The notes under the pieces were generated by a model. The model did no database searches. It was not told where the DNA came from and was given only the letters and a program-made list of their open reading frames with translations. Positions 5,454 to 64,000 of a stretch of DNA of 64,000 nucleotides are shown piece by piece. The DNA is taken from contig NIVC01000269.1 of the NCBI GenBank assembly GCA_002269645.1, positions 670,687 through 734,686 on the forward strand. Direction: 5' to 3'. The translations under genes and the position numbers were made by a program. The stretch is from Macrostomum lignano. Lineage: Eukaryota. Within the stretch, counting starts at the first letter, position 1. The number at the start of each line of letters is the position of its first letter.

Positions 5454-5459
5454 AGCGTC

Positions 5460-9615: not shown

Positions 9616-9929
9616 AGCCCTCGGCTACCAAGCTCATTCTTGAGTTGTTTGGCTGTTAGCTTGTCAGCGCGGAGCATATTGGCAGTGAGATATCGATATC
9701 TTAGGTAGCCAAAAAGATTTTAGCCAAGCACGCCAACGCTGAAGGGCAGAGTACATGAATAAAAGGGCCAACCCACACCTCAACCCTAACGGCAAACCCA
9801 ATCCTCACCACCCACACCCCACCCAGCGGGAAAAGGCACCGGACCCGGTCAGCTAAAACCGATTATAGAGCCAGTAAAACCGGCCATGAAATCGAAACAT
9901 TATTTCGGGAAATTCTCATCCAGCTGACA

Positions 9930-10916
9930 AAGTACTTTCTGCAACTGAGTGTACTGAGCAGGGGGGACTTGGGAGTCTGTAAGTTCGAGTAGGGAACAGA
10001 TGGAGCCTTGGCGTCTTGTAGGCTTCTAGATTGATAATGTTTCCTTTCAGATCTGAGTTTTCAGCTTCGTACTCACAATGGTTCCTGCCGAAGTACACTA
10101 AAGTACTTTCTGCAGCTGAATGTACTGAGCAGGGGGGGACTTGGGAGTCTGTAAGTTCGAGTAGGGAACAGATGGAGCCTTGGCGTCTTGTAGGCTTCTA
10201 GATTGATAATGTTTCCTTCCAGATCTCAGTTTTCAGCTTCGTACTCACAATGGTTCCTGCCGAAGTACACTAAAGTACTTTCTGCATATTAATGTACTAA
10301 GCGGGGGGGGGACTTGGGAGTCTGTAAGTTTGAGTAGGGAACAGATGGAGCTTTGGCGTCTTGTAGGCTTTTATATTGATAATGTTTCCTTCCAGATCTC
10401 AGTTTTCAGCTTCGTACTCACAATGGTTCCTGCCGAAGTACACTAAAGTACTTTCTGCAGTTGAGTGTACTGAGCAGGGGGGACTTGGGAGTCTGTAAGT
10501 TTGAGTAGGGAACAGATGGAGCCTTGGCGTCTTGTAGGCTTCTAGATTGATAATGTTTCCTTCCAGATCTGAGTTTTCAGCTTCGTACTCACAATGGTTC
10601 CTGCCGAAGTACACTAAAGTACTTTCTGCATATTAATGTACTAAGCGGGGGGGGGGACTTGGGAGTCTGTAAGTTCGAGTAGGGAACAGATGGAGCCTTG
10701 GCGTCTTGTAGGCTTCTAGATTGATAATGTTTCCTTCCAGATCTCAGTTTTCAGCTTCGTACTCACAATGGTTCCTGCCGAAGAACACTAAAGTAATCTT
10801 TGTGTTAAAATTTACATTAAATGAACATATTACATGTACAGTTTTTTGGTATATTTATATTGTATCGATGGCATTACCAACAATTGTTGATATGTTTTTA
10901 AGTTTTATTTATATTT
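9930..10916. repeat. Right inverted arm: five ~172-bp tandem units plus unique outer segment
   Basis: aagtactttct occurs at 9930, 10101, 10273, 10446 and 10617, with a variant at 10791. Two unit variants are present. Confidence 0.92.
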
Positions 10917-19014: not shown

Positions 19015-20553
19015 TTGATTACACGCAATGAGGTGGCTCTCCTACCCATTGAAACAATTACAGCGATTCTGCTGTACTACTTCGGTACAGCCAACCTCAA
19101 CTACTCCATTTACCCGCCCAACTTCGTGGACCGTCTCGTCAGCTTTCGCATTCGCTTTGAGCTGGGACTTCTAATCAAGTTTTTCATGGCCATCATCAAA
19201 AGTGCCGGATACCCAATTGGATTGCTGCTACAAATTCTAACTATTATTTACCTGGTGCGCGGCAACTCGGGCTATTCAAGGTCTGCTCGAAACTGGTTCC
19301 TCATCGTGCTGAGCGCTGACATTAGCAGCATCCTGTACCGGCTGTTCGATCTCATGACGGTCGATTATAACATAACCAACCCGTTTCTAGACGTTGGCCT
19401 TAAAGGAAATTTTGGCCAGTTGTTCATGGCCCTCATGTGGGGCCTGAGGCGTGCTGAGGATGCACACTTGCAAGATGTATTTTGCAAAGTGTTCTTCATT
19501 ATTTTGTACTTTCCAATTCACCTATCGCCAATTGCGCTCACTGTGAGCTCACTGATTCGTTGCTATTGCGTCAAGTTTCCTCTGAGAGCGAAAGCTGTGT
19601 TGACGACTCGAGTGGACAGGTTGCTGATGCTTTTTACCGTGGTGCTGTCACTGGGCATCGCCATCATCATCGGCATGCTGGTTATCGAAGGCTGGTCCAA
19701 CACTCACACCACCGTCCTCACAACTTTGGGCGACAGATATTTCTACGGCGAGTGTATAATTCCTGTCTACAATGCTGTCAATACAGACAGGAACTTGCTT
19801 TTCATCGGCCTGAACTTTATGCTAGCTGTAGTCTTCCTGATCTGCGCGTTCAACATCCTGTCAGCAGTTGCTATCATTATGGTTCTGTTCGAGGCCAAAA
19901 GGAATCGCAAGTCAATGAGCGCTAATGAGAGCACCGACTCAAAAGCCGAGGTTCGAGCCACTGCCATGCTTCTCGGCATGAATGTCACGCTTTTTATCTG
20001 TTTTTTCATGTCCCGCCTTCTAGCGGTTCTGAGCAACAAAGTCAACCTTACTACCCAGCCTATTGAGTGTGAGTAGCAGTTGATTTGAACCTGTTTTGCC
20101 TTGGTCACGTATTTTATAGAAAGATTCTTATCTTTCTACATAATCCATATTTCTAACCCATATGGAATATTAATTGATATTTGAAGGACAGGGACAGCCG
20201 ATCGGGATTGCTGGCTGTCGGGGCCGCGTTAGCCCACCTCTCTATACTAATAGCATAGCAACCTAAGATGAATTGAGAAATGATTTTATTCTTAGTGCAG
20301 AGAAGATACGCACATATTAGAGTTATCAATACATACATTGTTACTAAAACTTTATTGATTAAATTTTGCAGTCCTAGTTTTCGAACGAATGTCATCCTAT
20401 CTGTTCGACATCCCCTACTACACCAACGCTCTGTTTATTGCGGGTTTCACGAGGAAATTTTACGAATTCTACCTGCCGTGTCTGCTCAACAAGGAGATGA
20501 AAACGGCCTCGGCGATCAGCCAGAAGACCATGGAGGAGAGCAAGATGGGCTGA
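19015..20553 (+). CDS. Divergent rhodopsin-like 7TM receptor, paralogue A (exons ~19015-20068 and 20372-20553; 5' end uncertain)
   Basis: Six hydrophobic helices lie in the ORF. A GTGAGT donor at 20069 splices to tttgcAG at 20371, giving in-frame FLVFERMSSYLFDIPYYTNALFIAGFTRKFYEFYLPCL..TGA (20551-20553), which is TM7. The intron position and phase match paralogues B and C. The track start is TTG, so an upstream exon may be missing. Confidence 0.8.
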
Positions 20554-21074: not shown

Positions 21075-21720
21075 CTCTCTCTTCTTATCTCATCTCCTCT
21101 CCTGTCCTCTCCTGTCCTCTCCTGCCCTCTCCTGCCCCCACCTGTACTTTCCTGTCCTCTCCTCCCCTTTCCTCTCCTCTCCTCTCCTCTCCTCTCCTGT
21201 CCTCTCCTGTCCTCTCCTGTCCTCTCCTGTCCTCTCCTGTCCTCTCCTGTCCTCTCCTGTCCTCTCCTGTCCTCTCCTGTCCTCTCCTGTCCTCTCCTGT
21301 CCTCTCCTGTCCTCTCCTGTCCTCTCCTGTCCTCTCCTGTCCTCTCCTGTCCTCTCCTGTCCTCTCCTGTCCTCTCCTGTCCTCTCCTGTCCTCTCCTGT
21401 CCTCTCCTGTCCTCTCCTGTCCTCTCCTGTCCTCTCCTGTCCTCTCCTGTCCTCTCCTGTCCTCTCCTGTCCTCTCCTGTCCTCTCCTGTCCTCTCCTGT
21501 CCTCTCCTGTCCTCTCCTGTCCTCTCCTGTCCTCTCCTGTCCTCTCCTGTCCTCTCCTGTCCTCTCCTGTCCTCTCCTCTCCTCTCCTCTCTTTTCTCCT
21601 CTTCTCTCCTCTTCTATCTTCTCTCTTTTTTTCAACTCTCCTCTCCTCTTGTCTCCCCTCTTCCCCTTTATTCTCCTGCCTCTCCTTTCTCTTTTTTTCT
21701 AAATTTCCTCTCCTCTCACT
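21075..21720. repeat. (CCTCTCCTGT)n 10-bp pyrimidine-rich minisatellite with pyrimidine flanks
   Basis: Pure repeat from ~21195 to 21570. Confidence 0.97.
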
Positions 21721-36462: not shown

Positions 36463-37600
36463 TCAGTCCTTCCGATGAATGGTAAATGTGCAGTTGGTGA
36501 ACGTGCAGGTAGAAAACTGAAATCCAGCAGGACCCGACTTCACTGCACCAACAAACGTGGAACCACTGCTTTGAACTTGCGACTGACGCTCTTCCACGAA
36601 GTTGAACCCTGACTGACTAGGCTGAACAGCATTCACTGGACTCTGCATGGCCTGACGCTGCTCCACGAGGCGAGACTCGGGCTGAATAGGCTGAGCAGCA
36701 TTCACTGGACTCTGCATGGCCTGACGCTGCTCCACGAGGCGAGACTCGGGCTGAATAGGCTGAGCAGCATTCACTGGACTCTGCATGGCCTGAGGCTGCT
36801 CCACGAGGCGAGACTCGGGCTGAATAGGCTGAGCAGCATTCATCGCACTCTGCACAGCCATTGACGCACGATAAAAACTTGCATCTCTTTGAACCCTTAG
36901 GTAGCCGCGCACACTCTTCTCAGACTTGTGTCCAGTCACGGCCATGATCTCGTTGACATTGTAGCCCAATGCATGTAGATCACAAACGCGTGACACACTG
37001 AAAAAGTATGGAAATATTAAGCAATAAGTTCAGTAACACGAGACCGCATGAATATAATATTATTAACAACATCGTGAAAAAATATCGGATCATTACCTGA
37101 CACAGTGGTTAGTGTACTGCCCATCCAAGCCAGCTTTCGCACTCAAATTCTTCATAAAGTTATTATAATAATAATTTTTGCCACGATTCACCAACGCTGA
37201 GAACCCCTGTCCCTTCAGTGGCTTCGGAAAGAGACTGTCATCCTGGGTTGTCATTGGAATACGGCCCAAATACCGCTGCAGAACTGCAACATCGTACAGA
37301 CGAACTTGCTTCATGTCAGAAGACTGTTCCGCTAAACTTTTCGTTCCAAACGTTTAGTCTATGGCCATCATTTGGCTTGCGCCAAGTGGAAAATGCTATG
37401 ACACAAATCCCTAGAATCGCTTAGTGAAAAATTCCCGTCTGGGAAGTTGTGTCCTAGCCGTTTTGAATTGGTTTTTGGACGAAAATAGACACAATTCCAC
37501 TATCGAGAGGTAACGCTTCACACACAACTGCCTTACCGCGTCTCGGCAGGCCTCGACGCTATGGCAGTTGTGTGTGAAGCGTGACCTCTCGATAATCATA
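36463..37600 (-). pseudogene. Crypton-like tyrosine recombinase (DUF3504-type) relic with an intron
   Basis: VAVLQRYLGRIP, GKN..NNFMKNLSAKAGLDGQYTNHCV, intron (GTAATG at ~37096 to tttcAG at ~36998), LHALGYNVNEIMAVTGHKSEKSVRGY, C-terminal FQFSTCTFTNCTF. Three 69-bp coding repeats (36661, 36730, 36799). The upstream part is frameshifted. Confidence 0.7.
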
Positions 37601-37946: not shown

Positions 37947-39331
37947 TCAGTATGTCCTCTGGCTATCGGAGGAAGTCAGCTTCGGCTTTGGGTCCCCGAT
38001 GCAGGGAAAAAGAAACTGGTAAAAGCTTCTGGACAGACCGGCTATGAACAGCGAGTTCGTGAAGTACGGAATGTGGAACAGCATAGCCGCCAGTCGCTCA
38101 GAGACAACATCTGAAATTTGGTTGCTTTAAATTTTATAGCAAAAAGCACCAATACGAAAATATATCAATTCAAGCTGAGAAAAAGTTATGCTTTTACAAA
38201 AACAGTACTCACAGAGAACAGGATCCACGATAACTTCCACCCGCGTGCTGACCACCAGCAGCAGCCGGGAGAAGAAGAAACACAACAACAGCGTGACGTT
38301 CATCCCCAGCAGCCTGGCGGTGGCTCGAGCCTCCATGCTCACCGCGTCAGCTCCTTCATTGCTACTCATAGCCAACACGGCTCTCTTTCTCTTAGACTGA
38401 AACAGCACTATGATTATGATAGTAGCAGACAGCATGTTCAGGAAGCATATGAAGAAGGCCACTACTAGCATGAAAACAAAACCAATAAACTGAAGCTCTT
38501 TATCAGTACTTAGTGTCTGAAAAGACGGGACACTGCACGTTCCAAGATAAACTTGAATTCCGCGGACAGTAGTTAAAATGCGCGTATTGCTCCAGCCGTC
38601 TATAACCAGAGCGCCAAACACGACCGCCACAACCAGAGCAAGCAGCGAAGCCGCGAGAATCAAAATCAGGTCGAGTCTCTTGGTCAGGTGGGCTTTGGCA
38701 ACCAGCGGATACTTGATGCAGTAGCAGCGCAGTAGCGAGCTGATAGTCAGAGCGAACGGAGACAGGTACAGCGGGAAGTAGAGGATGATGAAGAATACTC
38801 TGCACATCACCTTCTGAAGGAATCTGTGGTCTTTAGACCGTAGGCCCCACATCAGAAGCTGCAAATCATTACCGGGTCCAGAGAATAGATATGGACTAGA
38901 GGCGTAAAAATCATTAGTGATCATTTCGTATGCGCGGTACAAGGTTCCCGCAATGTCTGCACTGACAACTAGCAGGAACCACTTCCTAGCGGACAGAGAG
39001 AAGCCGGTGTTTCCGCGAACCAGGAAAATGACGGTGAGGATCTGCAGCAGCAGGCCTGCTGGGAAGCCGATGGCTTTGGAAATCCCGATTCCAAATTTCA
39101 TAAACGCATTCCAATATTGTCGCACCAAATGGCTGTATTGTCCGCGTATGAACTCCTCTGTGCGAGTGTTGTTGTAGATTTTCTGCAGAAATCTCGCGTA
39201 TCCTGCAACCGAATTCGAGTTGGTATGCTGCTTATGATTTCTATTTGTAGGAATTGTCTGCAAATAGTTAAACGGCCGTATAATTCGAATTGCTTACCGT
39301 CAGGATCCCCAAAATATTTATAAATACTCAT
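37947..39331 (-). CDS. Divergent rhodopsin-like 7TM receptor, paralogue B, intact 3-exon model (39331-39298, 39202-38213, 38110-37947; 395 aa)
   Basis: ATG exon MSIYKYFGDPD-G with GTAAGC donor, ttgcAG acceptor, GTGAGT donor at 38212, tttcAG acceptor at 38111. Total 1188 nt in frame with TM7 LFHIPYFTNSLFIAGL. The same exon structure is conserved in paralogue C. Confidence 0.85.
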
Positions 39332-41363: not shown

Positions 41364-44300
41364 ATGCAAAAGGACGGAGAAGAATTCGAGTCGAACTACC
41401 CGCCGGCTGACGAGGAAGAACGCAAGCTGATGGACGCGAAGGCCGCCAAGACGAGGGCCAAGGCCGCATTCACCAAAGGAAGAAACCGGCTGGTACAACA
41501 ACTCGCTGCTGGTGGTCAAGACGGCGCCGAAGTACAACAGCAAGCGACTCTCATGGAGAAGCTATTCGAGGCGGTGACAACTGAGCTGGAGAAGCTGTTG
41601 GAGCTCGCCGGAAACGACCTGCCACTGCGTCGCCAAACGATCAAGGAGCTGGAGAATGCTGAAAAGGACTACGGTGAGACTGTGGGTCTGATGACCGAGT
41701 TCTGGAAAGATCGTAGCAGAAGTGAAGCAGCTGAGAGGGAGGAACAGGATCGCTTGGCGGAGTCTGAAGGACAGCAGAGGCGTGAGGAAGAGCAGCGAAA
41801 AGTGCAAGCCGCAGAGCACAGAGCGCTGGAGTTGGAAGAGGTGCAGAGAGAGCTAGAGAGAGACTATCAACAACGGCATGAGCAGTTGGCAGAGGAGCTG
41901 AGGCGACTGAAAATTGTTACTGGCAGCACTAAGGCAGAGAGCCCGTGTGAAAGGGCAAGCCCAGGTTCAGGTTTGGCTGAACAGTCGATTGGGGCTGAGG
42001 TGGGTGTAAGCGCTGCGCCAGACAGGAGTGAAAAAGCTGATTGGACTGCCCACGAAGGGGGTCAGGCGAGCGATCGATAAACCAAAACCCTGCACCCAGG
42101 CCAGCCACCTCACAGTCAGCCAGTGTACAGTCGCAACTCAGAGAGCCAATCGTTCAGCAGGAGTGTACACAGAGGGTGAGAGAAGAAGCGGAGAGGCAGG
42201 TCAGTCAGGACATGTGGCGGCAATTGCAGCGGGTGGCGATTCCCAGTTTCTCAGGTGATAAGCGTCAATACGAAGGGTGGAAGGCGGCCTTTTACGCGTG
42301 TGTAGATGCTGCACCCTCCTCTCGAGTGTACAAGCTATTGCAACTGAGGCAGTGTCTGCAGGGCGATGCGCTAAAGCTAATAGCCAACCTAGGGCATTCT
42401 GAATTTGCGTACAAGGCGGCTCTGGATAGGTTGGAGAGAGAATATGGAGGAGAGAGGCGCCGGCTGGTGCTAGTGTTGGAGGACCTGGACCGTTTTCGGC
42501 CCATTGTGACGGAGAGTGCGCCTCAGTTGAAGAAGCTGGCTGATCTGGTGGATGTAGCGGTTATCAATCTGATGGAGGCGGGTCGTGAAGCTGAACTAGA
42601 CAGCAATGGATTGCTTCATCTTCGCGTGCAAAAGAAATTGCCGACTGACACCTTGGCACGGTACCACCGATGGGTCGGGGAGAATGGCAGAAATGACACG
42701 CTCAGCGCTCTTCATCAATGGCTGCTGCGGGAGGCTGAGTATCAGACGGTTGCTATGGAGGCAGTGCATGGAGTTGCGGCACAGAATGGGCCAGGAGCAG
42801 GGAAGATGGAGCAAAGTAAGAAATTCAGCGGGATGCAGCGCACGGAAACAGCTCGAACGCATTTTGGCGCTGTCGCGGAGTCAACGAGAGCCGATGAGCA
42901 GCGCAAGAAAAACTGCCGTGTCTGTGAAGGAAGCCATGGCGCCTGGGAGTGCCCGAAGTTTGTGGAGATGGATGTAGTGAAGCGATGGGCCGTTGCTCGT
43001 GAGAAGAAGCTGTGCTTTCATTGTCTCGGCGTCAATCACTCTGGTTTAGCTTGTCGGCGGTCTAGAACCTGTGGCGTAGATGGTTGCCAAGGAAAACACC
43101 ATCGAATGCTTCACCAGAAGCGGGAGCCGAAACCAGCAGCTGCAGTGACGAGAGGCGGCGAAGGAGAGGCACGAAAACCCGCGGAGGACATATCAGCGGC
43201 GACGAAGAAGGAGCGCACTATGCTGGCTGAAGTCGTAAAGGAAACTGCGTTGAGGACGGTGCCGGTGATATTGGTGGCTGGTGAGCGCCAAGTTCGGATC
43301 AACGCGTTGCTTGATGATGCGAGTACGCGCACGTACCTCAATGCGGACGTAGCAGCAGAGCTGGGACTGGAAGGTAAACTTCAGCGCATAAACGTTAAGG
43401 TGCTCAACGGAGGAGTCGAGTCGTTTGAAACAGCGCCTGTAGAGGTGACAGTCCGGAGTGTCGATGCAGCGTTTGAGACAAAAATTGTTGCTTTCACAGC
43501 GGAGAAAGTAACCGGCGGAATGAAGGCAGTTGATTGGAGTCAACTGGCGGAGCACTGGGCGCATCTGAGAGGCATTCCGTTTGAGTCAACATCAAGCCGG
43601 AAGACGATTGACATGCTTATCGGTGTCGACAATGCCGAGATGCATCTGGCTTGCAAAGAAGTCTGTGGAATGCCAGGGGAACCAATAGCTCGACTGACTC
43701 CTATTGGATGGACCTGCATCGGGCAGTTAGGTTCGGATGAGGGAAGCAGCAAGAGCGGGGAATCGTTCCTCTGCCACGAGTGTCAAGATCAGGTCGACAG
43801 TCAGGTTCGAAGGTTGTGGGCGATCGAGGAAGTTCCTGATGTAGCTGAGCTGAACCGCGAAAGAGGGACGTTAACTGCGGATGAGCAGCATGCTGTGGCG
43901 GTAGTCAAGGAGTCGATGTCGGTGGTGGAAGGAAGATATCAGGTAGCCATTCCATGGAAGTCTCAAAATCGTGCTCTGCCGAGCAATCGTGAAGCTGCGG
44001 AACGCAGACTGATCAGCACGGAGAAGCGACTGCAGAGGAGTGAAGGATTGCCAAAAGCGTATCAGGGGTGTTGGAAGGCCAGTTGGAAAAAGGTTATCTC
44101 AAGAAGGTCGAAGACAGCAGTGAGCTTCAAAACACCGAATGGTACCTGCCGCATTTTCCGGTAATCAGAGAAGACAAGGACACCACCAAAGTCCGTATCG
44201 TGTTTGACGCTTCCGCGCGCTGCCAAGGAGTGAGTCTCAATGACGTCATCCTTCCAGGACCGAAGCTTCAGAACGACCTATTTCAAGTGCTCCTTCGATT

Positions 44301-47150
44301 CCGTCGCGGTCCAGTGGCAATCGTTTGCGACATTGAAGAGATGTACCTTAGAATTCGCCTCAAGCCAGAAGATCGGCGCTACTTTCGATTTTTGTGGCGA
44401 GACAGGAACGAAACGGGCAAACCTGAGGTATTCGAGTTTCAGAGTGTCGTTTTTGGAGTTAATTGTTCGCCGTTTCTTGCTCAGTTCGTGTCGCAGGAGC
44501 ATGCTAGGAGTCATCAGGAAACTTTTCCAAGAGCGTCAGAAACCATTCTGAAGTCGACCTACATGGACGACAGTTTGGACTCGTGAACAGCGTCCATGAA
44601 GCTATCCAGTTGCGCCGCGAACTGACAGCTCTGTGGGAAAAAGCCGGCATGCGTGCGAGAAAATGGATGTCGAACGCGTCTGAGGTGTTGGAGACAGTAG
44701 CTCCGGAGGATCGAGCGGTGAAAGCGCAGCACGTGCTTCGTGGAGAAATGGCGACGTCGAAGGCGTTGGGAGTGACTTGGACAGCCAATGATGATATGCT
44801 CGCGATCACGGGAAATGCAGGTGCGAAGGAAGTGTCCGTTGAGTCGAAACGACAGCTGCTCAAGCGCGTTGCGATGGTGTTCGACCCATGCGGGTTTCTG
44901 AGTCCATTTACAATTCGCGGGCGAATTCTTCTGCAGGAGATTTGGCAGAATGGAGCGGATTGGGATGAGCCCTTGGACCAGCAAGTTGCCGCGAAGGCTA
45001 CGCAATGGGCAGCGGAGATTGAAGAGTTGAGCATGCTGAAAATTCCACGATGTCTATGGCCTGATCCTACCAAAAAGGCAGTGCTACACGTCTTTGTGGA
45101 TGCATCTCAGGTGGCTTACGGCGCGGTAATCTATCTCAGGAGCGCCACAAGCCTGGACGAAATCTGTGTTCGTCTTGTAGCCGCAAAAGCACGTGTAGCT
45201 CCATTGGCAGCATGCAGCATCCCCAGACTCGAGCTCATGGCGGCGGTGCTTGGCGTGCGACTTGCCCAGACGGTGGCAGATGCGCTCGATTTAGACCTGA
45301 GAGAGTCGGTGTTCTGGAGTGACAGTGCAAATGTGCTCTGGTGGCTTCGAGGTCGCAGTAGAATTTTCAAGCCGTTCGTAGCAAATCGTGTTGCGTTCAT
45401 TCAGGAGGCGGTGAAGACTTGTCAGTGGCGTCACGTGCCGACCGATCTGAACCCCGCTGATGCCGTATCGCGAGGCTGTAGCGCCAAAGACCTTTGCCAA
45501 TCAGCGGTCTGGAGCGCGGGACCAGAGTTTCTGCTGCTAGATGAGGATGGCTGGCCGGCAAGGCTAGTTCCGACATCGGTTGACGGAGATCAAGAAGTTC
45601 GGCGAGAGGCGAGCAAGAGTAGTAAATCGGCGGCCGTAACTCTGTTGTCGAACGACACCACAGACAACGATTGTCGTTTGAATCCAGAGCGATTTTCGAG
45701 CTACCGCAGGCTGCGTAGCGTGACAGCATGGGTTCAGCGCTTCATCAGTAATTGCCGACTTCCACGAGATGAGAGACGACTTGGTGACCTCGAGGTCGAG
45801 GAGCTGCAAGAAGCTGAGGATCGAATCCTACGCGTGGCTCAGGAAGAAGCTTTCAAAGCAGAAGTTCAGCAGGTGCGTAGGGGAAAGCCAGTCTTCTCCA
45901 GCAGTCAGCTTCGCTGTCTCCAACCATTTCTTGATGAAGACGGACTGCTGCGAGTGGACGGAAGACTGAAGTTCGACCAGAATCTGTCATATCAGTCCAA
46001 GCATCCGGTCATTCTGCCGAGGCGAAGTTGGGTCACGAAGTTGTTGGTGAAGCACTATCACGAAGATCAAGGACATGGCGGAACAAACCAGACGCTGGCA
46101 GCGATGTCGACGAAGTTTTGGGTGATCGGTGGGCGCGAAGCCATTCGAGAATGGGAGAAGGAGTGCGCGCGATGCAGAAGGCAAAAAGCAGGACCGGAGG
46201 TGCAGCAGATGGCGCCGCTGCCAGAGGCCAGGCTGAAGAACTCTCTCCGAGCGTTCAGCTTTGTGGCAGTCGACTTCGGTGGTCCGTTTGAAACGGTACA
46301 AGGACGCGGAAGACGGCGAACGAAGAGGTATTTGGCCCTGTTCACCTGTTTGGAGACGAGAGCCGTGCACCTAGAGATGGCGTATAGCTTGGATTCTGAC
46401 TCGTTTCTGAATGCTTTCGCGCGCATGATCAACCGTAGAGGCCGGCCACTCGAAGTTTACTCGGACAACGGCGGCAACTTTGTCAAAGGCGAGCGAGAAC
46501 TACGAGAATTCGAAAACGAGCAGCAGAACAAAATCCAGAGAGCGGCAGCTGAGCGCGGCATCAAGTGGCGCTTCCAGCCTCCGTCGGCGCCCCATTTCGG
46601 CGGCGCCCACGAAGTTATGGTTCGCGCCGCTAAGCGAGCTGTGCGCGCCATCCTTAGCAACGCTGACATCACCGACGAAGAGCTGCATTCCGCCTTCACA
46701 GGTGCGGAAGCGCTCATCAATTCCAGGCCGCTGACATACCAAACCGCAAGCCCAAAGGACGACACGCCGTTGACGCCAAACCATTTCTTGCATGGACAGC
46801 TGGGTGGTGACTTTGCTACGGAAGTCTCGACCGAGGTCAGCCGCGACCCGCGCCGGCGGTGGCGACGTGTCCAAGAGCTGGTGCGGCACTTCTGGCACCG
46901 ATGGCTGCGTGAGTGGGTGCCAAGACTCAACGCCAGATCCAAGTGGGTCAAGGAGCAGCCGGATCTCGCCGTCGGCGACATCGTCTTGGCGCTACGAGCG
47001 GATGCGCCTCGAGGACACTGGCCGCTCGGGCGAGTTCTCGAGGTATTTCCTGGACGAGACGGCCATGTGCGCGTGGCCAAGGTGCGGACTGGCGGTGGGA
47101 CAGTGCTGCGACCCGTGACGAAGTTGTGTGTGCTGCAGCGAGGTGAATAG
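41364..47150 (+). CDS. BEL/Pao Gag-Pol polyprotein (Gag, three Zn knuckles, protease, RT, RNase H, integrase), split here by three -1 shifts
   Basis: IPSFSGDKRQYEGWKAAF, CRVCEGSH..C / CFHC..H..C / CGVDGC..HH..LH, ALLDDAS, RIVFDAS, YMDD, HVFVDASQVAYGA, HHCC, DFGGP, SDNGGNF, and the C-terminal RPVTKL domain. Confidence 0.93.
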
Positions 47151-49554: not shown

Positions 49555-50890
49555 TCACGTAGTCCTCTGGCTATCGGAAAAAGTCAGCTTCGGCTTCGAG
49601 TCCCTGATACAGGGAAACAGAAACTGGTAAAAGCCTCTGGACAGACCGGCTATGAACAGCGAGTTCGTGAAGTACGGAATGTGGAACAGCATAGCCGCCA
49701 GTCGCTCAGAGACAACATCTGAAATTTGGTTGCTTCAACTTCAGCATGGAGAGTAAAAACAGAAAGGCTTACACAAGACGGGGTCCGCATAGCTGTCAAT
49801 CCTCGTGCTGACCACCAGCAGCAGCCTGGAGAAGAATAAACACAACAACAGCGTGACGTTCATCCCCAGCAGCCTGGCGGTGGCTCGAGCCTTCATGCTC
49901 ACCGCGTCAGCTCCTTCACTGCCACTCATTGTCAGCACAGCTCTCTTTCTTTTAGACTGAAACAGCACTATGATTATGATAGTGGCAGACAGCATGTTCA
50001 GGAAGCATATGAAGAAGGCCACTACTAGCATGAAAGCAAAACCAACGAACTGCAACTCCTTATCAGTATTGACTGTCAGAAATATTGGAACGCTGCATTT
50101 CCCATAGTAAACATGGATGCCGTATGTCGTCGTAGATAAAAACCTTAAGCACCAGCCGTCTATAATCAGAGCGCCAAACACGACCGCCACAACCAGAGCA
50201 AGCAGCAAAGCGGCAAGAATCAAAATCAGGTCGAGTCTCTTGGTCAGGTGGACTTTAGCAACCAGCGGATATTTGATGCAGTAGCAGCGCAGTAGCGAGC
50301 TGATGGTCAGAGCGAACGGAGACAGGTATAGCGGAAGTAGAGAATAATGAAGAATACTCTGCACATCACCTTCTGGAGGAATTCGTGGTCTTTAGACCGC
50401 AGGCCCCACATTAGAAACTGCAGATCGTTTCCGGGTCCATAACTAGCGTAGGGATTGGAATCAAAAAAATCATCAGTGATCTTTTCGTATGCGCGGTACA
50501 AGGTGCCTGAACTGTCCGCACTGACGACTAGGAGAAACCACTTCTTGGCTGACAGAGAGAAGCCGGTGTTTCCGCGAACCAGGAAAATGACGGTGAGGAT
50601 CTGCAGCAGCAGGCCTGCTGGGAAGCCGATGGCCTTGGAAATCCCGATTCCAAATTTTATAAATGCTGTGCAATATTGTTGCACCAAACGGCTGTATTTT
50701 CAGGCTATGAGCTGAGTGCGAGTGTTATTGTGGATTTTCTGCAGAAATCTCGCGTATCCTGCAAAAGAATTCGAGTTGAAATGCTGAAATTTCTCAACTA
50801 TTTTTAGAAATTGTCTGCAAATGGTTAAGCCGACGCAGAAAAAGCAAGCCGCTTACCATCTGGGTTCCCAACATATTCAAAATTACTCAT
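49555..50890 (-). pseudogene. 7TM receptor paralogue C (exons 50890-50857, 50758-49773, 49718-49555), probable pseudogene
   Basis: Close paralogue of B (MSNFEYVGNPD-GYARFLQK..). In-frame TGA at 50702-50700, aligned with the Gly codon of B, plus a 1-nt deletion near 50333. Confidence 0.8.
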
Positions 50891-55289: not shown

Positions 55290-55910
55290 TTAAAAGACTG
55301 TCTTGCCGAATAGCCAACCAGGTCAACTGCATGGCGTTTGCAAAATCCACAAACCGGACAAGCCCCTTGGACCGATTGTCTCCATGATTATTACTGCTAA
55401 GTACCAATTAGCTAAATATCGCGATCATCTGATCCGGCTAACCATTCCGCGTGAACATTCCAGCAAATCGACCAATAAATTTATGAATCATTTGAAAGAA
55501 GTTAGCCCAACTAACGTAAGCTAAATTTGCAGTTTTGATGTGACTTCTCTGTTCACGAACCTTCGTCTACAGTTGGCGATCGATCTGGCCGCTGATTTTG
55601 TCTATGCACATGCTCCCCTAAGTTTCCAAAAAGTTTCAATAAACTAATAAATTTTGTCACTTCTGGGCTGTTCCTGTTCAATGATCAGTACTATTGCCAA
55701 ATTAATTAACGACTGCACAATGGGTAGCCTTCTCGCGCCTTTAGCCAACATTTGGATTGCGCACTGGGGGAAGCAGTGGATGACACCCTAAATTGTGCGC
55801 CTAGATTCTACAAACACTATGTTGACGACACTTTTGCCATTTTCAAAGCGAACTCGTATCATGAACGGTTTCTTACCGCTCTGAACTCCACTCATAAAAA
55901 CATCCAGACT
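55290..55910 (+). mobile_element. Penelope-like RT remnant
   Basis: PGQLHGVCKIHKPDKPLGPIVS, SFDVTSLFTN, CTMGSLLAP, RFYKHYVDDTFAIF..FLTALNSTHKNI. Stops and frameshifts present. Confidence 0.8.
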
Positions 55911-56588
55911 TAGCATACCGGAATCAATGTACATCAAGAATAAAAAAACAAGTCTCAATGTCCAGCTTATTCACAGTGGTGCGGGTCATTTGTTCAAGGT
56001 ATTCTTAGTGTAGGCACGAAGCATTGTAGTGCGCCCGCCTGTTTAAAACTTCCATCCAATGTACCTTCATAATTGGACAATCTGCCCCCCTTTGGACTGT
56101 ACAGAAACGTTTTCTTATATAATTTGATGCATACGTGAAAAATAAAATATATCTCAGACGCTGAACATGGCCGCTGACTAAACCAAACGCGTTGGCTGAC
56201 TGATTTAATTAAAGCAATCTATGTTGGTTTTGTTATTTATATTTCTGTGCTTACTCAAGCGAGCTACTTTTTAGCTCAACAAAAGCTTCTGATGCATTCT
56301 GACCTCTACGTTATGTCGGATATACGTTCAACTCTAGTTGTTGCCTTGATAGGGTTGATTCTGGGCATCTCTGCACTTCGCACCGACAATGATATTGTCA
56401 TTTTCGTTGGGATTAAAATAGCAACAATGCAATTAACCGGTTCTCTCTCTCTCTCGCTCTCTCTTGCTCTCTTTCTCTGTCGTTTGGAGCCATTCGACAC
56501 TCATCTAATACCCAAAAAGGAAATAATAAAAAAGACAATGAACGAACAGCTTCAACGGAAATAATAACGCATACTTCCTTTCAATCGG

Positions 56589-56594
56589 TTTATT
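56589..56594 (-). terminator. Polyadenylation signal of peptide gene
   Basis: AATAAA ~104 nt after the stop codon, conserved in all copies. Confidence 0.5.
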
Positions 56595-56697
56595 TTTCAG
56601 TTTTGAATCAACTGAATCGCAGGTTGTCAAAACGCACTCCTCCTATTCTAGGACAATCGACGGTCATGCTTCCATCGTTACCTTAATTAAAACAGAT

Positions 56698-56883
56698 TTA
56701 TCCGCCATATCCTTCGCAAGGTACAAAATCCCCTGCGCCAGCGCAACCCAAACCGCTATTACATAATTCAGGATAGCTGATGTAGCAGACTTCTTGCAAG
56801 CAGTAACAGCCTTGTCCATTGGCTGAATATGCTGCAAACGCAAGAAGCAACACCAGAAGAGAGAGGAAAGCTAGTCTCTGCAT
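56698..56883 (-). CDS. Secreted six-cysteine peptide precursor, copy 1 (61 aa)
   Basis: MQRLAFLSLLVLLLAFAAYSANG (signal-peptide-like) + QGCYCLQEVCYISYPELCNSGLGCAGAGDFVPCEGYGG. ATG in tcaaATG context, with TATA upstream and AATAAA downstream. Confidence 0.75.
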   Translation of the reverse strand: MQRLAFLSLLVLLLAFAAYSANGQGCYCLQEVCYISYPELCNSGLGCAGAGDFVPCEGYGG

Positions 56884-56973
56884 TTGAACGGCGCTTGTTG
56901 CGATAAAAAAGGGACAAAACTTGCTGTCTCTTAGTGATTTCAATCAGCAATACTGCCAAATGCCCATGCAAGG

Positions 56974-56980
56974 CTATATA
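56974..56980 (-). promoter_or_regulatory. TATA box of peptide gene (present in copies 1-3; copy 4's lies at the window edge)
   Basis: TATATAG lies 26 nt upstream of an initiator-like GCAGT and 97 nt upstream of the ATG. Confidence 0.55.
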
Positions 56981-57664
56981 GAAAATCAGTCCGGATGCGA
57001 TAAGCAGATTTATTATCGAAAGCTCCTTATTTGGTATACACTGCATATACACACGCACACGCCTAGTAGCGATTATTGGTCGGACACACAATCTGAAAGA
57101 TTTTAGAAATTAGCGATGTTGAATGAACAGGAAAGGCGATAAGGGTAAACAGGCAGAGCACTACGGTAGGAGCACTAGCAGAATGCCGATTCCGAATGCA
57201 GAGTTGCGTTAAGAAATTTCCACTGACACTGGCAGGTGGAGTCTGGCTGATCACCACTTTAGCATCGATAGCATACTATACGAGAGTATTTTAGGCACGG
57301 CGAGATAGGAAAACGAGTTGAAGATTGAAGATTTAAGATTGGAGATTGATTGAAGACGGAGCATCATTGACTTTGCTAGGGGTAAAATATCCAGCGCGAC
57401 AGATAAAACATTTTTTATTATCGATAGGAGATGGGTACAGGCAAGGTGCAAGGTGAGAATATTGAACATTAATTAGCTAGCCCAGGGAGGTGACGGTAAA
57501 ATGACTGACCGCAAGCTACGTAGTGTACAAGTGTACATAAAAAGCTGCTTTGACTGGCCGACAAAACCATCAAAACAGCACTGCCTTGCAGCTTAATGAA
57601 AAGCGGTAGGCTGTGCGGCATCTTGCTTATTTTTAGGTTTGATGTTTGATGTTTTATCTGTCGC

Positions 57665-57960
57665 ATACGGATATCGAGATGCTGTTAAGGAACGCCGAGA
57701 CCTGGACGCTGACGGAATCGCTCGAACAGCAGGGTCGATGCGGCGCACGCTGGCCTGCTGCGCGCCGCCTTCAAGATCGGTTACGAGCGAGTCACCAATG
57801 CGGCACTCTATTGCTGCACCGGCCTGCTCCGTCCAAGCGAGCTGTTGTGCCGTCGGCGACTCCAGCTGGCAGGCCATATTTTATCCGAGCCGAGTCGTAC
57901 TGCCCACAGCCGGTGCAGGAGGTGCTGCTGCTGACGCTGCAAGCACCCTACCGGCGGGGG
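57665..57960 (+). mobile_element. RTE-clade LINE remnant ending at the unit junction (also ~60075-60372 and ~62495-62792)
   Basis: ETWTLTESLEQQ and IRAESYCPQPVQEVLLLTLQAPYRRG, the same family as 30735-31862. Confidence 0.8.
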
Positions 57961-58888
57961 AAGCAGTGGATGACACCCTAAATTGTGCGCCTAGATTCTA
58001 CAAACACTATGTTGACGACACTTTTGCCATTTTCAAAGCGAACTCGTATCATGAACGGTTTCTTACCGCTCTGAACTCCACTCATAAAAACATCCAGACT
58101 TAGCATACCGGAATCAATGTACATCAAGAATAAAAAAACAAGTCTCAATGTCCAGCTTATTCACAGTGGTGCGGGTCATTTGTTCAAGGTATTCTTAGTG
58201 TAGGCACGAAGCATTGTAGTGCGCCCGCCTGTTTAAAACTTCCATCCAATGTACCTTCATAATTGGACAATCTGCCCCCCCTTTGGACTGTACAGAAACG
58301 TTTTCTTATATAATTTGATGCATACGTGAAAAATAAAATATATCTCAGACGCTGAACATGGCCGCTGACTAAACCAAACGCGTTGGCTGACTGATTTAAT
58401 TAAAGCAATCTATGTTGGTTTTGTTATTTATATTTCTGTGCTTACTCAAGCGAGCTACTTTTTAGCTCAACAAAAGCTTCTGATGCATTCTGACCTCTAC
58501 GTTATGTCGGATATACGTTCAACTCTAGTTGTTGCCTTGATAGGGTTGATTCTGGGCATCTCTGCACTTCGCACCGACAATGATATTGTCATTTTCGTTG
58601 GGATTAAAATAGCAACAATGCAATTAACCGGTTCTCTCTCTCTCTCGCTCTCTCTTGCTCTCTTTCTCTGTCGTTTGGAGCCATTCGACACTCATCTAAT
58701 ACCCAAAAAGGAAATAATAAAAAAGACAATGAACGAACAGCTTCAACGGAAATAATAACGCATACTTCCTTTCAATCGGTTTATTTTTCAGTTTTGAATC
58801 AACTGAATCGCAGGTTGTCAAAACGCACTCCTCCTATTCTAGGACAATCGACGGTCATGCTTCCATCGTTACCTTAATTAAAACAGAT

Positions 58889-59074
58889 TTATCCGCCATA
58901 TCCTTCGCAAGGTACAAAATCCCCTGCGCCAGCGCAACCCAAACCGCTATTACATAATTCAGGATAGCTGATGTAGCAGACTTCTTGCAAGCAGTAACAG
59001 CCTTGTCCATTGGCTGAATATGCTGCAAACGCAAGAAGCAACACCAGAAGAGAGAGGAAAGCTAGTCTCTGCAT
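58889..59074 (-). CDS. Secreted six-cysteine peptide precursor, copy 2
   Basis: Identical translation to copy 1. Confidence 0.75.
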   Translation of the reverse strand: MQRLAFLSLLVLLLAFAAYSANGQGCYCLQEVCYISYPELCNSGLGCAGAGDFVPCEGYGG

Positions 59075-61301
59075 TTGAACGGCGCTTGTTGCGATAAAAA
59101 AGGGACAAAACTTGCTGTCTCTTAGTGATTTCAATCAGCAATACTGCCAAATGCCCATGCAAGGCTATATAGAAAATCAGTCCGGATGCGATAAGCAGAT
59201 TTATTATCGGAAAGCTCCTTATTTGGTATACACTGCATATACACACGCACACGCCTAGTAGCGATTATTGGTCGGACACACAATCTGAAAGATTTTAGAA
59301 ATTAGCGATGTTGAATGAACAGGAAAGGCGATAAAGGTAAACAGGCAGAGCACTACGGTAGGAGCACTAGCAGAATGCCGATTCCGAATGCAGAGTTGCG
59401 TTAAGAAATTTCCACTGACACTGGCAGGTGGAGTCTGGCTGATCACCACTTTAGCATCGATAGCATACTATACGAGAGTATTTTAGGCACGGCGAGATAG
59501 GAAAACGAGTTGAAGATTGAAGATTTAAGATTGGAGATTGATTGAAGACGGAGCATCATTGACTTTGCTAGGGGTAAAATATCCAGCGCGACAGATAAAA
59601 CATTTTTTATTATCGATAGGAGATGGGTACAGGCAAGGTGCAAGGTGAGAATATTGAACATTAATTAGCTAGCCCAGGGAGGTGACGGTAAAATGACTGA
59701 CCGCAAGCTACGTAGTGTACAAGTGTACATAAAAAGCTGCTTTGACTGGCCGACAAAACCATCAAGACAGCACTGCCTTGCAGCTTAATGAAAAGCGGTA
59801 GGCTGTGCGGCATTTTGCTTATTTTTAGGTTTGCATAATTAAGCTAAAGAGAGTAAATCCAGAAAAGAGATGCTAAGCTGTGGACAAGAATGACGCTTAG
59901 CACCTCTCCACAGACAATCCCGTTTCTGGTTTATCCAGCCTGGGGCTGGTGCACATTTTCGGTTTGGGAGGCCGTAATTACGTGCTGGCTGCTGTCTGGT
60001 GCAGGTGCAATTGCGCGCGTGCACTATCCCTGGATGATAACGCTGAAGCCAAAGCTTTTTAAGCCCAGGCCGATAGCATACGGATATCGAGATGCTGTTA
60101 AGGAACGCCGAGACCTGGACGCTGACGGAATCGCTCGAACAGCAGGGTCGATGCGGCGCACGCTGGCCTGCTGCGCGCCGCCTTCAAGATCGGTTACGAG
60201 CGAGTCACCAATGCGGCACTCTATTGCTGCACCGGCCTGCTCCGTCCAAGCGAGCTGTTGTGCCGTCGGCGACTCCAGCTGGCAGGCCATATTTTATCCG
60301 AGCCGAGTCGTACTGCCCACAGCCGGTGCAGGAGGTGCTGCTGCTGACGCTGCAAGCACCCTACCGGCGGGGAAGCAGTGGATGACACCCTAAATTGTGC
60401 GCCTAGATTCTACAAACACTATGTTGACGACACTTTTGCCATTTTCAAAGCGAACTCGTATCATGAACGGTTTCTTACCGCTCTGAACTCCACTCATAAA
60501 AACATCCAGACTTAGCATACCGGAATCAATGTACATCAAGAATAAAAAAACAAGTCTCAATGTCCAGCTTATTCACAGTGGTGCGGGTCATTTGTTCAAG
60601 GTATTCTTAGTGTAGGCACGAAGCATTGTAGTGCGCCCGCCTGTTTAAAACTTCCATCCAATGTACCTTCATAATTGGACAATCTGCCCCCCTTTGGACT
60701 GTACAGAAACGTTTTCTTATATAATTTGATGCATACGTGAAAAATAAAATATATCTCAGACGCTGAACATGGCCGCTGACTAAACCAAACGCGTTGGCTG
60801 ACTGATTTAATTAAAGCAATCTATGTTGGTTTTGTTATTTATATTTCTGTGCTTACTCAAGCGAGCTACTTTTTAGCTCAACAAAAGCTTCTGATGCATT
60901 CTGACCTCTACGTTATGTCGGATATACGTTCAACTCTAGTTGTTGCCTTGATAGGGTTGATTCTGGGCATCTCTGCACTTCGCACCGACAATGATATTGT
61001 CATTTTCGTTGGGATTAAAATAGCAACAATGCAATTAACCGGTTCTCTCTCTCTCTCTCGCTCTCTCTTGCTCTCTTTCTCTGTCGTTTGGAGCCATTCG
61101 ACACTCATCTAATACCCAAAAAGGAAATAATAAAAAAGACAATGAACGAACAGCTTCAACGGAAATAATAACGCATACTTCCTTTCAATCGGTTTATTTT
61201 TCAGTTTTGAATCAACTGAATCGCAGGTTGTCAAAACGCACTCCTCCTATTCTAGGACAATCGACGGTCATGCTTCCATCGTTACCTTAATTAAAACAGA
61301 T

Positions 61302-61487
61302 TTATCCGCCATATCCTTCGCAAGGTACAAAATCCCCTGCGCCAGCGCAACCCAAACCGCTATTACATAATTCAGGATAGCTGATGTAGCAGACTTCTTG
61401 CAAGCAGTAACAGCCTTGTCCATTGGCTGAATATGCTGCAAACGCAAGAAGCAACACCAGAAGAGAGAGGAAAGCTAGTCTCTGCAT
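61302..61487 (-). CDS. Secreted six-cysteine peptide precursor, copy 3
   Basis: Identical translation to copy 1. Confidence 0.75.
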   Translation of the reverse strand: MQRLAFLSLLVLLLAFAAYSANGQGCYCLQEVCYISYPELCNSGLGCAGAGDFVPCEGYGG

Positions 61488-63722
61488 TTGAACGGCGCTT
61501 GTTGCGATAAAAAAGGGACAAAACTTGCTGTCTCTTAGTGATTTCAATCAGCAATACTGCCAAATGCCCATGCAAGGCTATATAGAAAATCAGTCCGGAT
61601 GCGATAAGCAGATTTATTATCGGAAAGCTCCTTATTTGGTATACACTGCATATACACACGCACACGCCTAGTAGCGATTATTGGTCGGACACACAATCTG
61701 AAAGATTTTAGAAATTAGCGATGTTGAATGAACAGGAAAGGCGATAAAGGTAAACAGGCAGAGCACTACGGTAGGAGCACTAGCAGAATGCCGATTCCGA
61801 ATGCAGAGTTGCGTTAAGAAATTTCCACTGACACTGGCAGGTGGAGTCTGGCTGATCACCTAGCATCGATAGCATCGATAGCATACTATACGAGAGTATT
61901 TTAGGCACGGCGAGATAGGAAAACGAGTTGAAGATTGAAGATTTAAGATTGGAGATTGATTGAAGACGGAGCATCATTGACTTTGCTAGGGGTAAAATAT
62001 CCAGCGCGACAGATAAAACATTTTTTTATTATCGATAGGAGATGGGTACAGGCAAGGTGCAAGGTGAGAATATTGAACATTAATTAGCTAGCCCAGGGAG
62101 GTGACGGTAAAATGACTGACCGCAAGCTACGTAGTGTACAAGTGTACATAAAAAGCTGCTTTGACTGGCCGACAAAACCATCAAGACAGCACTGCCTTGC
62201 AGCTTAATGAAAAGCGGTAGGCTGTGCGGCATTTTGCTTATTTTTAGGTTTGCATAATTAAGCTAAAGAGAGTAAATCCAGAAAAGAGATGCTAAGCTGT
62301 GGACAAGAATGACGCTTAGCACCTCTCCACAGACAATCCCGTTTCTGGTTTATCCAGCCTGGGGCTGGTGCACATTTTCGGTTTGGGAGGCCGTAATTAC
62401 GTGCTGGCTGCTGTCTGGTGCAGGTGTGCAATTGCGCGCGTGCACTATCCCTGGATGATAACGCTGAAGCCAAAGCTTTTTAAGCCCAGGCGATAGCATA
62501 CGGATATCGAGATGCTGTTAAGGAACGCCGAGACCTGGACGCTGACGGAATCGCTCGAACAGCAGGGTCGATGCGGCGCACGCTGGCCTGCTGCGCGCCG
62601 CCTTCAAGATCGGTTACGAGCGAGTCACCAATGCGGCACTCTATTGCTGCACCGGCCTGCTCCGTCCAAGCGAGCTGTTGTGCCGTCGGCGACTCCAGCT
62701 GGCAGGCCATATTTTATCCGAGCCGAGTCGTACTGCCCACAGCCGGTGCAGGAGGTGCTGCTGCTGACGCTGCAAGCACCCTACCGGCGGGGAAGCAGTG
62801 GATGACACCCTAAATTGTGCGCCTAGATTCTACAAACACTATGTTGACGACACTTTTGCCATTTTCAAAGCGAACTCGTATCATGAACGGTTTCTTACCG
62901 CTCTGAACTCCACTCATAAAAACATCCAGACTTAGCATACCGGAATCAATGTACATCAAGAATAAAAAAACAAGTCTCAATGTCCAGCTTATTCACAGTG
63001 GTGCGGGTCATTTGTTCAAGGTATTCTTAGTGTAGGCACGAAGCATTGTAGTGCGCCCGCCTGTTTAAAACTTCCATCCAATGTACCTTCATAATTGGAC
63101 AATCTGCCCCCCCTTTGGACTGTACAGAAACGTTTTCTTATATAATTTGATGCATACGTGAAAAATAAAATATATCTCAGACGCTGAACATGGCCGCTGA
63201 CTAAACCAAACGCGTTGGCTGACTGATTTAATTAAAGCAATCTATGTTGGTTTTGTTATTTATATTTCTGTGCTTACTCAAGCGAGCTACTTTTTAGCTC
63301 AACAAAAGCTTCTGATGCATTCTGACCTCTACGTTATGTCGGATATACGTTCAACTCTAGTTGTTGCCTTGATAGGGTTGATTCTGGCATCTCTGCACTT
63401 CGCACCGACAATGATATTGTCATTTTCGTTGGGATTAAAATAGCAACAATGCAATTAACCGGTTCTCTCTCTCTCTCGCTCTCTCTCTGCTTGCTCTCTT
63501 CTCTGTCGTTTGGAGCCATTCGACACTCATCTAATACCCAAAAAGGAAATAATAAAAAAGACAATGAACGAACAGCTTCAACGGAAATAATAACGCATAC
63601 TTCCTTCAATCGGTTTATTTTTCAGTTTTGAATCAACTGAATCGCAGGTTGTCAAAACGCACTCCTCCTATTCTAGGACAATCGACGGTCATGCTTCCAT
63701 CGTTACCTTAATTAAAACAGAT

Positions 63723-63908
63723 TTATCCGCCATATCCTTCGCAAGGTACAAAATCCCCTGCGCCAGCGCAACCCAAACCGCTATTACATAATTCAGGATA
63801 GCTGATGTAGCAGACTTCTTGCAAGCAGTAACAGCCTTGTCCATTGGCTGAATATGCTGCAAACGCAAGAAGCAACACCAGAAGAGAGAGGAAAGCTAGT
63901 CTCTGCAT
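63723..63908 (-). CDS. Secreted six-cysteine peptide precursor, copy 4
   Basis: Identical translation to copy 1. Confidence 0.75.
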   Translation of the reverse strand: MQRLAFLSLLVLLLAFAAYSANGQGCYCLQEVCYISYPELCNSGLGCAGAGDFVPCEGYGG

Positions 63909-64000
63909 TTGAACGGCGCTTGTTGCGATAAAAAAGGGACAAAACTTGCTGTCTCTTAGTGATTTCAATCAGCAATACTGCCAAATGCCCATGCAAGGCT

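Follow-up and report, generated by a model that had tools for sequence, protein, structure and literature searches.

A tandem array that closes a contig from the flatworm Macrostomum lignano holds identical copies of a short open reading frame (ORF). The locus raises the question of whether this ORF is a gene, and what its product and its amplification would mean. The DNA analysed (hereafter the window) comprises the final 64 kb (positions 670687 to 734686) of the 734,686-bp contig NIVC01000269.1 of assembly Mlig_3_7 (GCA_002269645.1). The last bases of the window and of the contig coincide, and the contig ends inside the array. In a preliminary description, made from the sequence, the array had been read as a recently amplified gene for an anionic six-cysteine secreted peptide. 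We consider it likely that the ORF is a real, unannotated, and lineage-restricted M. lignano gene encoding a secreted acidic peptide with six cysteines. The product is a probable new cysteine-rich secreted peptide that would in effect found a family of its own, within a kind of gene that is well known.

The ORF comprises 186 nt (183 nt of codons and a TAA stop codon), lies on the minus strand, and encodes a product of 61 residues, MQRLAFLSLLVLLLAFAAYSANGQGCYCLQEVCYISYPELCNSGLGCAGAGDFVPCEGYGG. All four intronless copies that had been described were found in the window; they are 100% identical to each other, with zero mismatches (Table 1). The computed values also agree with the earlier account of a 23-residue leader and a 38-residue mature part with a defined cysteine spacing, four acidic residues, and neither Lys nor Arg. 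In the mature part, Cys residues occupy positions 3, 5, 10, 18, 24, and 33, giving the framework C-x-C-x4-C-x7-C-x5-C-x8-C. It contains three Glu, one Asp, and no Lys, Arg, or His (net charge about -4.3 at pH 7), together with eight Gly and four Tyr, and has a mass of about 3.93 kDa. Its N-terminal residue, after the likeliest of the predicted cleavage sites, would be Gln24, and the ORF ends in Gly-Gly-stop. Each 2.2-2.4 kb unit of the array holds one such ORF in a compact arrangement, consisting of a predicted 5' untranslated region (UTR) of ~70 nt, the 186-nt coding sequence (CDS), a predicted 3' UTR of ~100 nt, and AATAAA.

The N-terminus of the precursor has the n-, h-, and c-region layout of a signal peptide (MQR / LAFLSLLVLLLAFAA / YSANG), with A at position -3 and G at position -1. 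Cleavage after A-N-G is most likely on this layout; cleavage after A17 or S20 is a less likely alternative. ORFs were screened by a crude rule that required a basic n-region, a 12-residue uncharged window with a mean Kyte-Doolittle value of at least 2.2, and a -3/-1 site. The peptide ORF was the sole signal-peptide-like ORF in the window. Outside the array, none of the 122 ATG-initiated ORFs of at least 50 aa passed the rule, and none (0/122) combined it with six or more Cys residues. Under a first-order Markov null, 0.27 signal-like ORFs were expected per 64 kb, and 0.005 signal-like ORFs with at least six Cys residues (1/200 simulations). The criteria of this test and of the test of flanking signals below were set after the sequence had been viewed, and the figures of both are indicative only.

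The sequences around the ORF resemble those of a compact transcription unit. At copy 1, the TATA box, the initiator-like site, and the AATAAA were found as described earlier. A TATATAG motif lies 97 nt upstream of the ATG. An initiator-like CAGT (within TGGCAGTATTG) follows downstream, its A being 26 nt from the first T of this motif. The transcription start inferred from this spacing predicts a 5' UTR of about 71 nt, in which there is no upstream ATG. The TATA box of copy 4 would fall at about position 64005, past base 64000 and the contig end; in this respect the earlier account does not extend to every copy, and the complete promoter is present in three copies only. A polypyrimidine tract followed by AG (TTTTTTATCGCAACAAG) ends 11 nt before the ATG and has equivalents in the other copies. 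It is a possible acceptor for spliced-leader trans-splicing, which would leave a very short 5' UTR, or a possible 3' splice acceptor. In the equivalent windows of the control ORFs (n = 122), an upstream TATA motif occurred in 3/122, a downstream AATAAA in 19/122, and both in 1/122.

Relatives of the peptide were sought in several ways. A word-indexed homology search of 5.8 billion proteins gave no candidate, and an exact-sequence look-up gave no record. An exhaustive phmmer search of 1.84 billion cluster representatives gave 0 matches at E<=0.001, a result that, with a 61-aa query, excludes only fairly close relatives. A scan of JGI metagenomes produced 600 pattern matches, none of which was confirmed. 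Within the window, tblastn of the peptide revealed no divergent paralogue beyond the four copies. Pfam matches of the precursor were sub-threshold and confined to the signal peptide (DIM and GPR180), and phmmer against Protein Data Bank (PDB) sequences gave none at E<=10. Two routes to a paralogous locus, a 167-aa ORF within the unit and a G protein-coupled receptor (GPCR) sequence 88% identical to a receptor gene of the window, returned no record on look-up, and no contig other than that of the window was obtained. In the literature, the peptide strings occurred in no paper found, and nothing relevant was found on Macrostomum together with cysteine-rich, antimicrobial, toxin-like, or tandem secreted peptides. 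The view that the peptide cannot be assigned to a family is borne out by the protein, metagenome, Pfam, PDB sequence, and fold searches, none of which yielded an accepted match. The gene is previously unannotated and is an orphan with no detectable relatives. The GenBank annotation of M. lignano dropped transcripts that overlap repeats (PMC5730564). A 61-aa ORF in a repeat flanked by transposable elements (TEs) would be removed by such a filter even if it were highly expressed; a missing database entry therefore has no bearing on whether the gene is expressed.

The array is arranged head to tail, with repeat spacings of 2190, 2412, and 2420 bp. It starts at position 55767, about 800 bp to the left of the start at 56589 given previously, and extends to base 64000, the contig end. 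Because the contig ends inside the array, the copy number of four, although it is correct for the ORFs in the window, is a lower bound (at least four copies). The units are 99.3-100% identical (blastn of one unit). They differ by few substitutions, by several 1-7-bp insertions or deletions that mostly affect homopolymers or a TC microsatellite, and by one segment of ~240 bp. This segment belongs to a retroelement fragment at the right edge of the unit. It is present in units 2 and 3 (59833-60075 and 62252-62495) and missing from unit 1, in which about 20 bp of other sequence (57640-57662) takes its place; the units are thus not uniform. This structural difference indicates that the units are physically distinct copies. 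Between the AATAAA and the initiator-like site, both included, the four gene copies show no difference from one another. A scan for terminal inverted repeats or long terminal repeats (LTRs) within one unit found short, chance-level repeats only. Rfam at gathering thresholds and a tRNA scan gave no match across the whole window, which rules out an array of structured RNA genes (spliced leader RNA, snRNA, 5S, or tRNA).

Both edges of the unit lie in retroelement debris. On the left, a degenerate reverse transcriptase (RT) fragment, readable in three frames, carries the motifs KIHKPDKPLGPIVS, FDVTSLFTN, and MGSLLAPLAN and continues across the array border with GEAVDD…FYKHYVDD…LNSTHKNIQ. Its 3' part, from GEAVDD...YVDD onward, recurs at the beginning of every unit. 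The stitched fragment matched Pfam RVT_1 weakly (E=0.0055, under the gathering score). Motifs typical of Penelope-like RT domains (HK…P.RPI.S, SxDVxSLFTN, MGS…AN, and YVDD) are visible in the translation, and on these the fragment looks Penelope-like. The right edge of the unit is formed by a fragment that had no match in Pfam and that, on motif knowledge only, is presumably the RT C-terminus of a LINE (long interspersed nuclear element)-like element. At positions 57957, 60369, and 62789, the two fragments meet in a common junction, …CCGGCGGGG(G)AAGCAGTGG…. At 55767, the RT fragment runs on into unique upstream sequence (left border 55766/55767). Head-to-tail units, one novel junction, and a left border continuous with the flank were all found, and this border pattern is characteristic of a tandem segmental duplication that broke within a retroelement fragment on either side. 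The middle of the unit holds the peptide gene, on the strand opposite to the RT fragments, and is otherwise featureless. An origin of the peptide from the retroelement itself was rejected: the RT fragment stops at about 55915, and nothing TE-like overlaps the gene.

The array probably originated in a tandem segmental duplication whose breakpoints fell in the Penelope-like fragment on the left and the LINE-like fragment on the right, the two being joined at a GGGG(G) microhomology. Expansion or homogenisation by unequal crossing-over would then have kept the copies about 99-100% identical. The idea of a recent amplification for dosage is weakened by these features: the unit is mostly non-coding and bounded by retroelements, the genome is rich in repeats, and near-identity could stem from a recent duplication or from homogenisation, without selection on dosage.

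The peptide was compared with known families of small disulfide-rich peptides. Alpha-defensins have the framework C-x-C-x3-4-C-x9-C-x6-10-CC and a cationic mature peptide. The peptide described here shares with these mammalian peptides six Cys residues that start with C-x-C-x4-C, small size, (predicted) secretion, and tandem genes; it differs in its x7/x5/x8 spacings without CC, its anionic character, its lack of a propiece, and its occurrence in a flatworm, outside the known taxonomic range. Alpha-defensins were rejected, given the framework without CC, the charge of -4.3, and the lack of a defensin family in Pfam at E<=1; the doubt already expressed about this resemblance was justified by framework, charge, and profile alike. 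Inhibitor cystine knot (ICK) peptides, cyclotides, and squash knottins are marked either by an adjacent Cys pair (C-C-CC-C-C) or by a C-x-C formed by Cys IV and V (C…C-x-C), and cysteine-stabilised (CS) alpha-beta defensins have a helix CxxxC paired with a downstream CxC. The knottin group was rejected, as the peptide has no adjacent Cys residues, has its CxC at I-II, and has no Pfam, PDB sequence, or Foldseek match. CS-alpha-beta defensins were rejected in the same way, since there is no CxxxC, the CxC is N-terminal, and there is no Pfam match. The spacing is C-x7-C-x4-5-C-x10-13-C-x-C-x8-C in EGF domains and C-x7-C-x-C-x4-5-C-x4-5-C-x10-C in hirudin and decorsin; the peptide is unlike both and has no Pfam match at E<=1 and no PDB sequence match at E<=10, and an EGF or hirudin-like domain was rejected.

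Other resemblances are looser. Leech antihaemostatic peptides (the hirudin N-domain and decorsin/ornatin) are acidic, ~40 residues long, and have three disulfides. The peptide is likewise acidic, with an internal C-x-C-x4/5-C and Tyr beside acidic residues; the leech peptides differ in having a Cys seven residues before the CxC and unlike later spacings, and no fold match was found. Acidic six-Cys water-borne pheromones are known from other phyla, namely the Euplotes Er-1 family and Aplysia attractin. These are similar in size and negative charge and, as predicted for the peptide here, in having three disulfides and being secreted. They are helical bundles with another Cys spacing, whereas low-confidence models of the M. 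lignano peptide show helical precursor residues 3-21 and an N-terminal beta-hairpin formed by mature residues 3-6 and 9-12; the comparison is one of analogy, not homology. Taxon-restricted small cysteine-rich secreted peptides in tandem arrays include the SCRiPs of corals and orphan effectors of cnidarians and molluscs. With them, the peptide shares a predicted signal peptide followed by a mature part of ~40 aa that would be stabilised by disulfides, a narrow lineage, and compact local duplicates. It has no sequence or Cys-framework similarity to them, is strongly acidic, and has six Cys residues only. The closest category is that of taxon-restricted small cysteine-rich secreted peptides from locally duplicated compact genes.

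A signal peptide, six Cys residues, and flanking signals together are very improbable in non-coding DNA, which argues against a chance ORF, and we regard it as very probable from these features that the ORF is a genuine protein-coding gene. Several points weigh on the other side. The signal-peptide rule is home-made, crude, and different from SignalP, and its thresholds were chosen post hoc. The context of the ATG had been called good; this was overstated, since with C at -3 and C at +4 (cAA-ATG-C) it is only fair. The same stretch is open in all three minus-strand frames (ORFs of 59, 81, and 107 aa), so ORF length alone is no argument for a gene. Of the structure prediction and fold search suggested as a check, the prediction yielded models; AlphaFold2, run without an alignment, gave them low confidence (predicted local distance difference test [pLDDT] 63.8 for the precursor and 65.7 for the mature part). 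The fold search was empty: Foldseek against the PDB gave 0 matches, a result that is uninformative at pLDDT 64-66. Zero homologues and four identical copies leave no signal from which purifying selection or a conserved Cys pattern could be read. The M. lignano genome has a share of about 15% of simple and tandem repeats (PMC5730564); tandem repeats being so common, amplification alone is weak evidence of function or of selection on dosage. On these grounds, the ORF could be a chance reading frame in a non-coding, TE-flanked tandem repeat from which no peptide is made, a reading that fits the retroelement debris at the unit edges, the three open frames, the repeat content of the genome, the zero homologues, and the lack of a GenBank annotation at the locus. 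Annotation filters account for the last of these, and the co-occurrence of a signal peptide, six Cys in 38 residues, TATA/initiator spacing, no upstream ATG, and AATAAA (0.005 per window in the null; 1/122 among the controls) makes this reading quite unlikely. It is also unlikely that the gene is real and the array mostly an assembly artefact or the outcome of neutral repeat instability; dosage would then not be adaptive, and the true copies might number only one or two. The array does lie at a contig end, where assemblers typically fail, many of the unit differences are homopolymer or microsatellite lengths of the kind that long-read errors produce, and the assembly is known to be redundant (PMC5730564); against this stand the ~240-bp structural difference, the few true substitutions between units, and the consistent junction sequence at three internal borders.

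If the ORF is the secreted-peptide gene that we favour, its 61-aa product would enter the endoplasmic reticulum co-translationally through the 23-residue signal peptide and be cut after A-N-G. The released 38-residue, 3.9-kDa acidic peptide would form three disulfides from its six Cys residues and be exported by a secretory (gland) cell. The N-terminal Gln and the C-terminal Gly would allow pyroglutamate formation and amidation, and Tyr sulfation is conceivable because Tyr adjoins acidic residues in the sequence. Several identical gene copies would boost the yield of an abundant secretory product. Signal peptides are over-represented among Macrostomum transcripts from the tail and the prostate, and homologues of reproduction-related genes are hard to find (PMC7336406, PMC5977470). 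The prostate-limited putative seminal fluid transcripts of M. lignano itself (Mlig-pro) are likewise mostly orphans, many with a signal peptide, and belong to a class of genes that evolves rapidly (PMC5977470). The peptide sequence was not present in the text or supplements of that study, the supplements probably being without sequence listings (PMC5977470). Given such priors on orphan signal-peptide genes in Macrostomum, our best guess is a role in bulk exocrine secretion, either reproductive/seminal or surface/defensive. More specific roles are less probable. A defence effector, antimicrobial or toxin-like and akin to defensins or knottins, would have the typical architecture seen here, a small disulfide-rich and (as predicted) secreted peptide encoded by tandem genes, and the first three Cys residues resemble the start of an alpha-defensin. 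The net charge of about -4 without a basic residue makes the classical membrane-active mechanism of cationic antimicrobial peptides unlikely, the Cys framework fits no alpha- or beta-defensin, CS-alpha-beta, ICK, or cyclotide pattern, and no Pfam family, PDB sequence, or fold matched, so that we hold such an effector to be very unlikely. A ligand role like that of a hormone, neuropeptide, or pheromone, with pyroglutamate and an amide at the ends of the peptide and a receptor possibly among the GPCRs 5-37 kb away, is highly improbable. The Gln after the predicted cleavage site, the last residue Gly, the three paralogous orphan seven-transmembrane (7TM) genes in the window, and the existence of the Euplotes and Aplysia pheromones would suit such a ligand; dibasic processing sites and a multi-copy precursor layout are lacking, a high-copy tandem array fits bulk secretion better than signalling, and the receptor link is pure speculation, with a retrotransposon between the GPCR cluster and the array. 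We give equally little credence to the boldest combination, in which a new macrostomid-specific disulfide-rich fold or family, pyroglutamate-capped and amidated, possibly Tyr-sulfated, and made in bulk from the array, would manipulate mates or conspecifics, through the semen or as a pheromone, and might be detected by the nearby GPCR cluster.

The rest of the window contains receptor genes, mobile elements, and repeats (Table 1). The three rhodopsin-type 7TM receptor genes are paralogous and lineage-specific, and a BEL/Pao element sits between the GPCR genes and the array. The annotated protein BOX15_Mlig020260g1 is identical to the first receptor over the body of its ORF, and a 22.8-kb locus retrieved from the contig is 100% identical to positions 7715-30553 of the window. 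Interstitial blocks of the telomere-type repeat TTAGGG lie about 60 kb from the contig end. An ORF with a Ulp1-type C48 peptidase and a PHD finger possibly belongs to a DNA transposon or to a gene that has been domesticated. The further tandem repeats include 15/24/48-bp GC-skewed minisatellites, a 171-bp satellite (x5), a 10-bp TCCTCTCCTG microsatellite (x50), and a 69-bp repeat (x3.5) inside an ORF. The many tandem repeats of the window are consistent with the high repeat load reported for the genome.

Table 1. Coordinates of the array, the peptide gene copies with their predicted signals, and other features of the window (positions count from the first base of the window)
Feature	Position	Strand	Remarks
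Array unit 1	55767-57956		2190 bp, phased on junction
Array unit 2	57957-60368		2412 bp, phased on junction
Array unit 3	60369-62788		2420 bp, phased on junction
Array unit 4	62789-64000		Partial, ended by contig end
Peptide CDS, copy 1	56698-56883	-	61 aa + TAA; residues 1-23 predicted signal peptide, 24-61 mature part
Peptide CDS, copy 2	58889-59074	-	Identical to copy 1
Peptide CDS, copy 3	61302-61487	-	Identical to copy 1
Peptide CDS, copy 4	63723-63908	-	Identical to copy 1
TATATAG, copy 1	56974-56980	-	Sequence reading
TATA boxes, copies 2 and 3	59165-59171; 61578-61584	-	Sequence reading
Initiator-like CAGT	56948-56958	-	A at 56954
Polypyrimidine tract + AG	56894-56910	-	Candidate acceptor
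AATAAA, copy 1	56589-56594	-	103 nt past stop; GT/T-rich sequence next
AATAAA, copies 2-4	58780-58785; 61193-61198; 63614-63619	-	Sequence reading
Degenerate RT fragment	55300-55915	+	Three-frame translation; crosses left array border
LINE-like RT C-terminal fragment	60050-60368	+	Frameshifted; …AETWTLTESLEQQ…VTNAALY…RRLQLAGHIL…; right unit edge
LINE-like fragment in unit 1	57663-57956	+	Shorter; translation
Rhodopsin-type 7TM receptor gene 1	19015-20076	+	Weak Pfam 7tm_1; annotated BOX15_Mlig020260g1, continues past intron after …QPIE
Rhodopsin-type 7TM receptor gene 2	38127-39263	-	Weak Pfam 7tm_1
Rhodopsin-type 7TM receptor gene 3	49741-50364	-	207 aa, looks truncated; 88% identical to UniRef M. 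lignano fragment
BEL/Pao-type LTR retrotransposon	41364-47150	+	gag-like + pol frames: Peptidase_A17, integrase, DUF5641, DUF1759
Retroelement remnant	7769-9615	-	RT ORF (RVT_1, E=1e-10) + upstream gag-like ORF, CCHC-like end
Interstitial TTAGGG telomere-type blocks	6498-6605; 6865-6957		About 19 and 15 copies
ORF with Ulp1-type C48 peptidase + PHD finger	4038-4877	+	
42-bp x 12.8 tandem repeat	4919-5454		Directly after Ulp1/PHD ORF
Further tandem repeats	1247-2121; 9929-10795; 21095-21588; 36613-36854		

Invertebrate genomes commonly encode orphan secreted peptides rich in cysteine, and a case known from sequence bears on no long-standing question. If it is expressed, the gene would equip a flatworm model for regeneration, adhesion, and sexual conflict with a high-copy secretory peptide that its annotation lacks. 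With RNA interference, in situ hybridisation, and transgenesis all routinely available for M. lignano, finding its function could be a rapid matter. A blind spot of annotation is also apparent at the locus: short ORFs in DNA flagged as repeats are filtered out, and similar small effector genes may be missed genome-wide.

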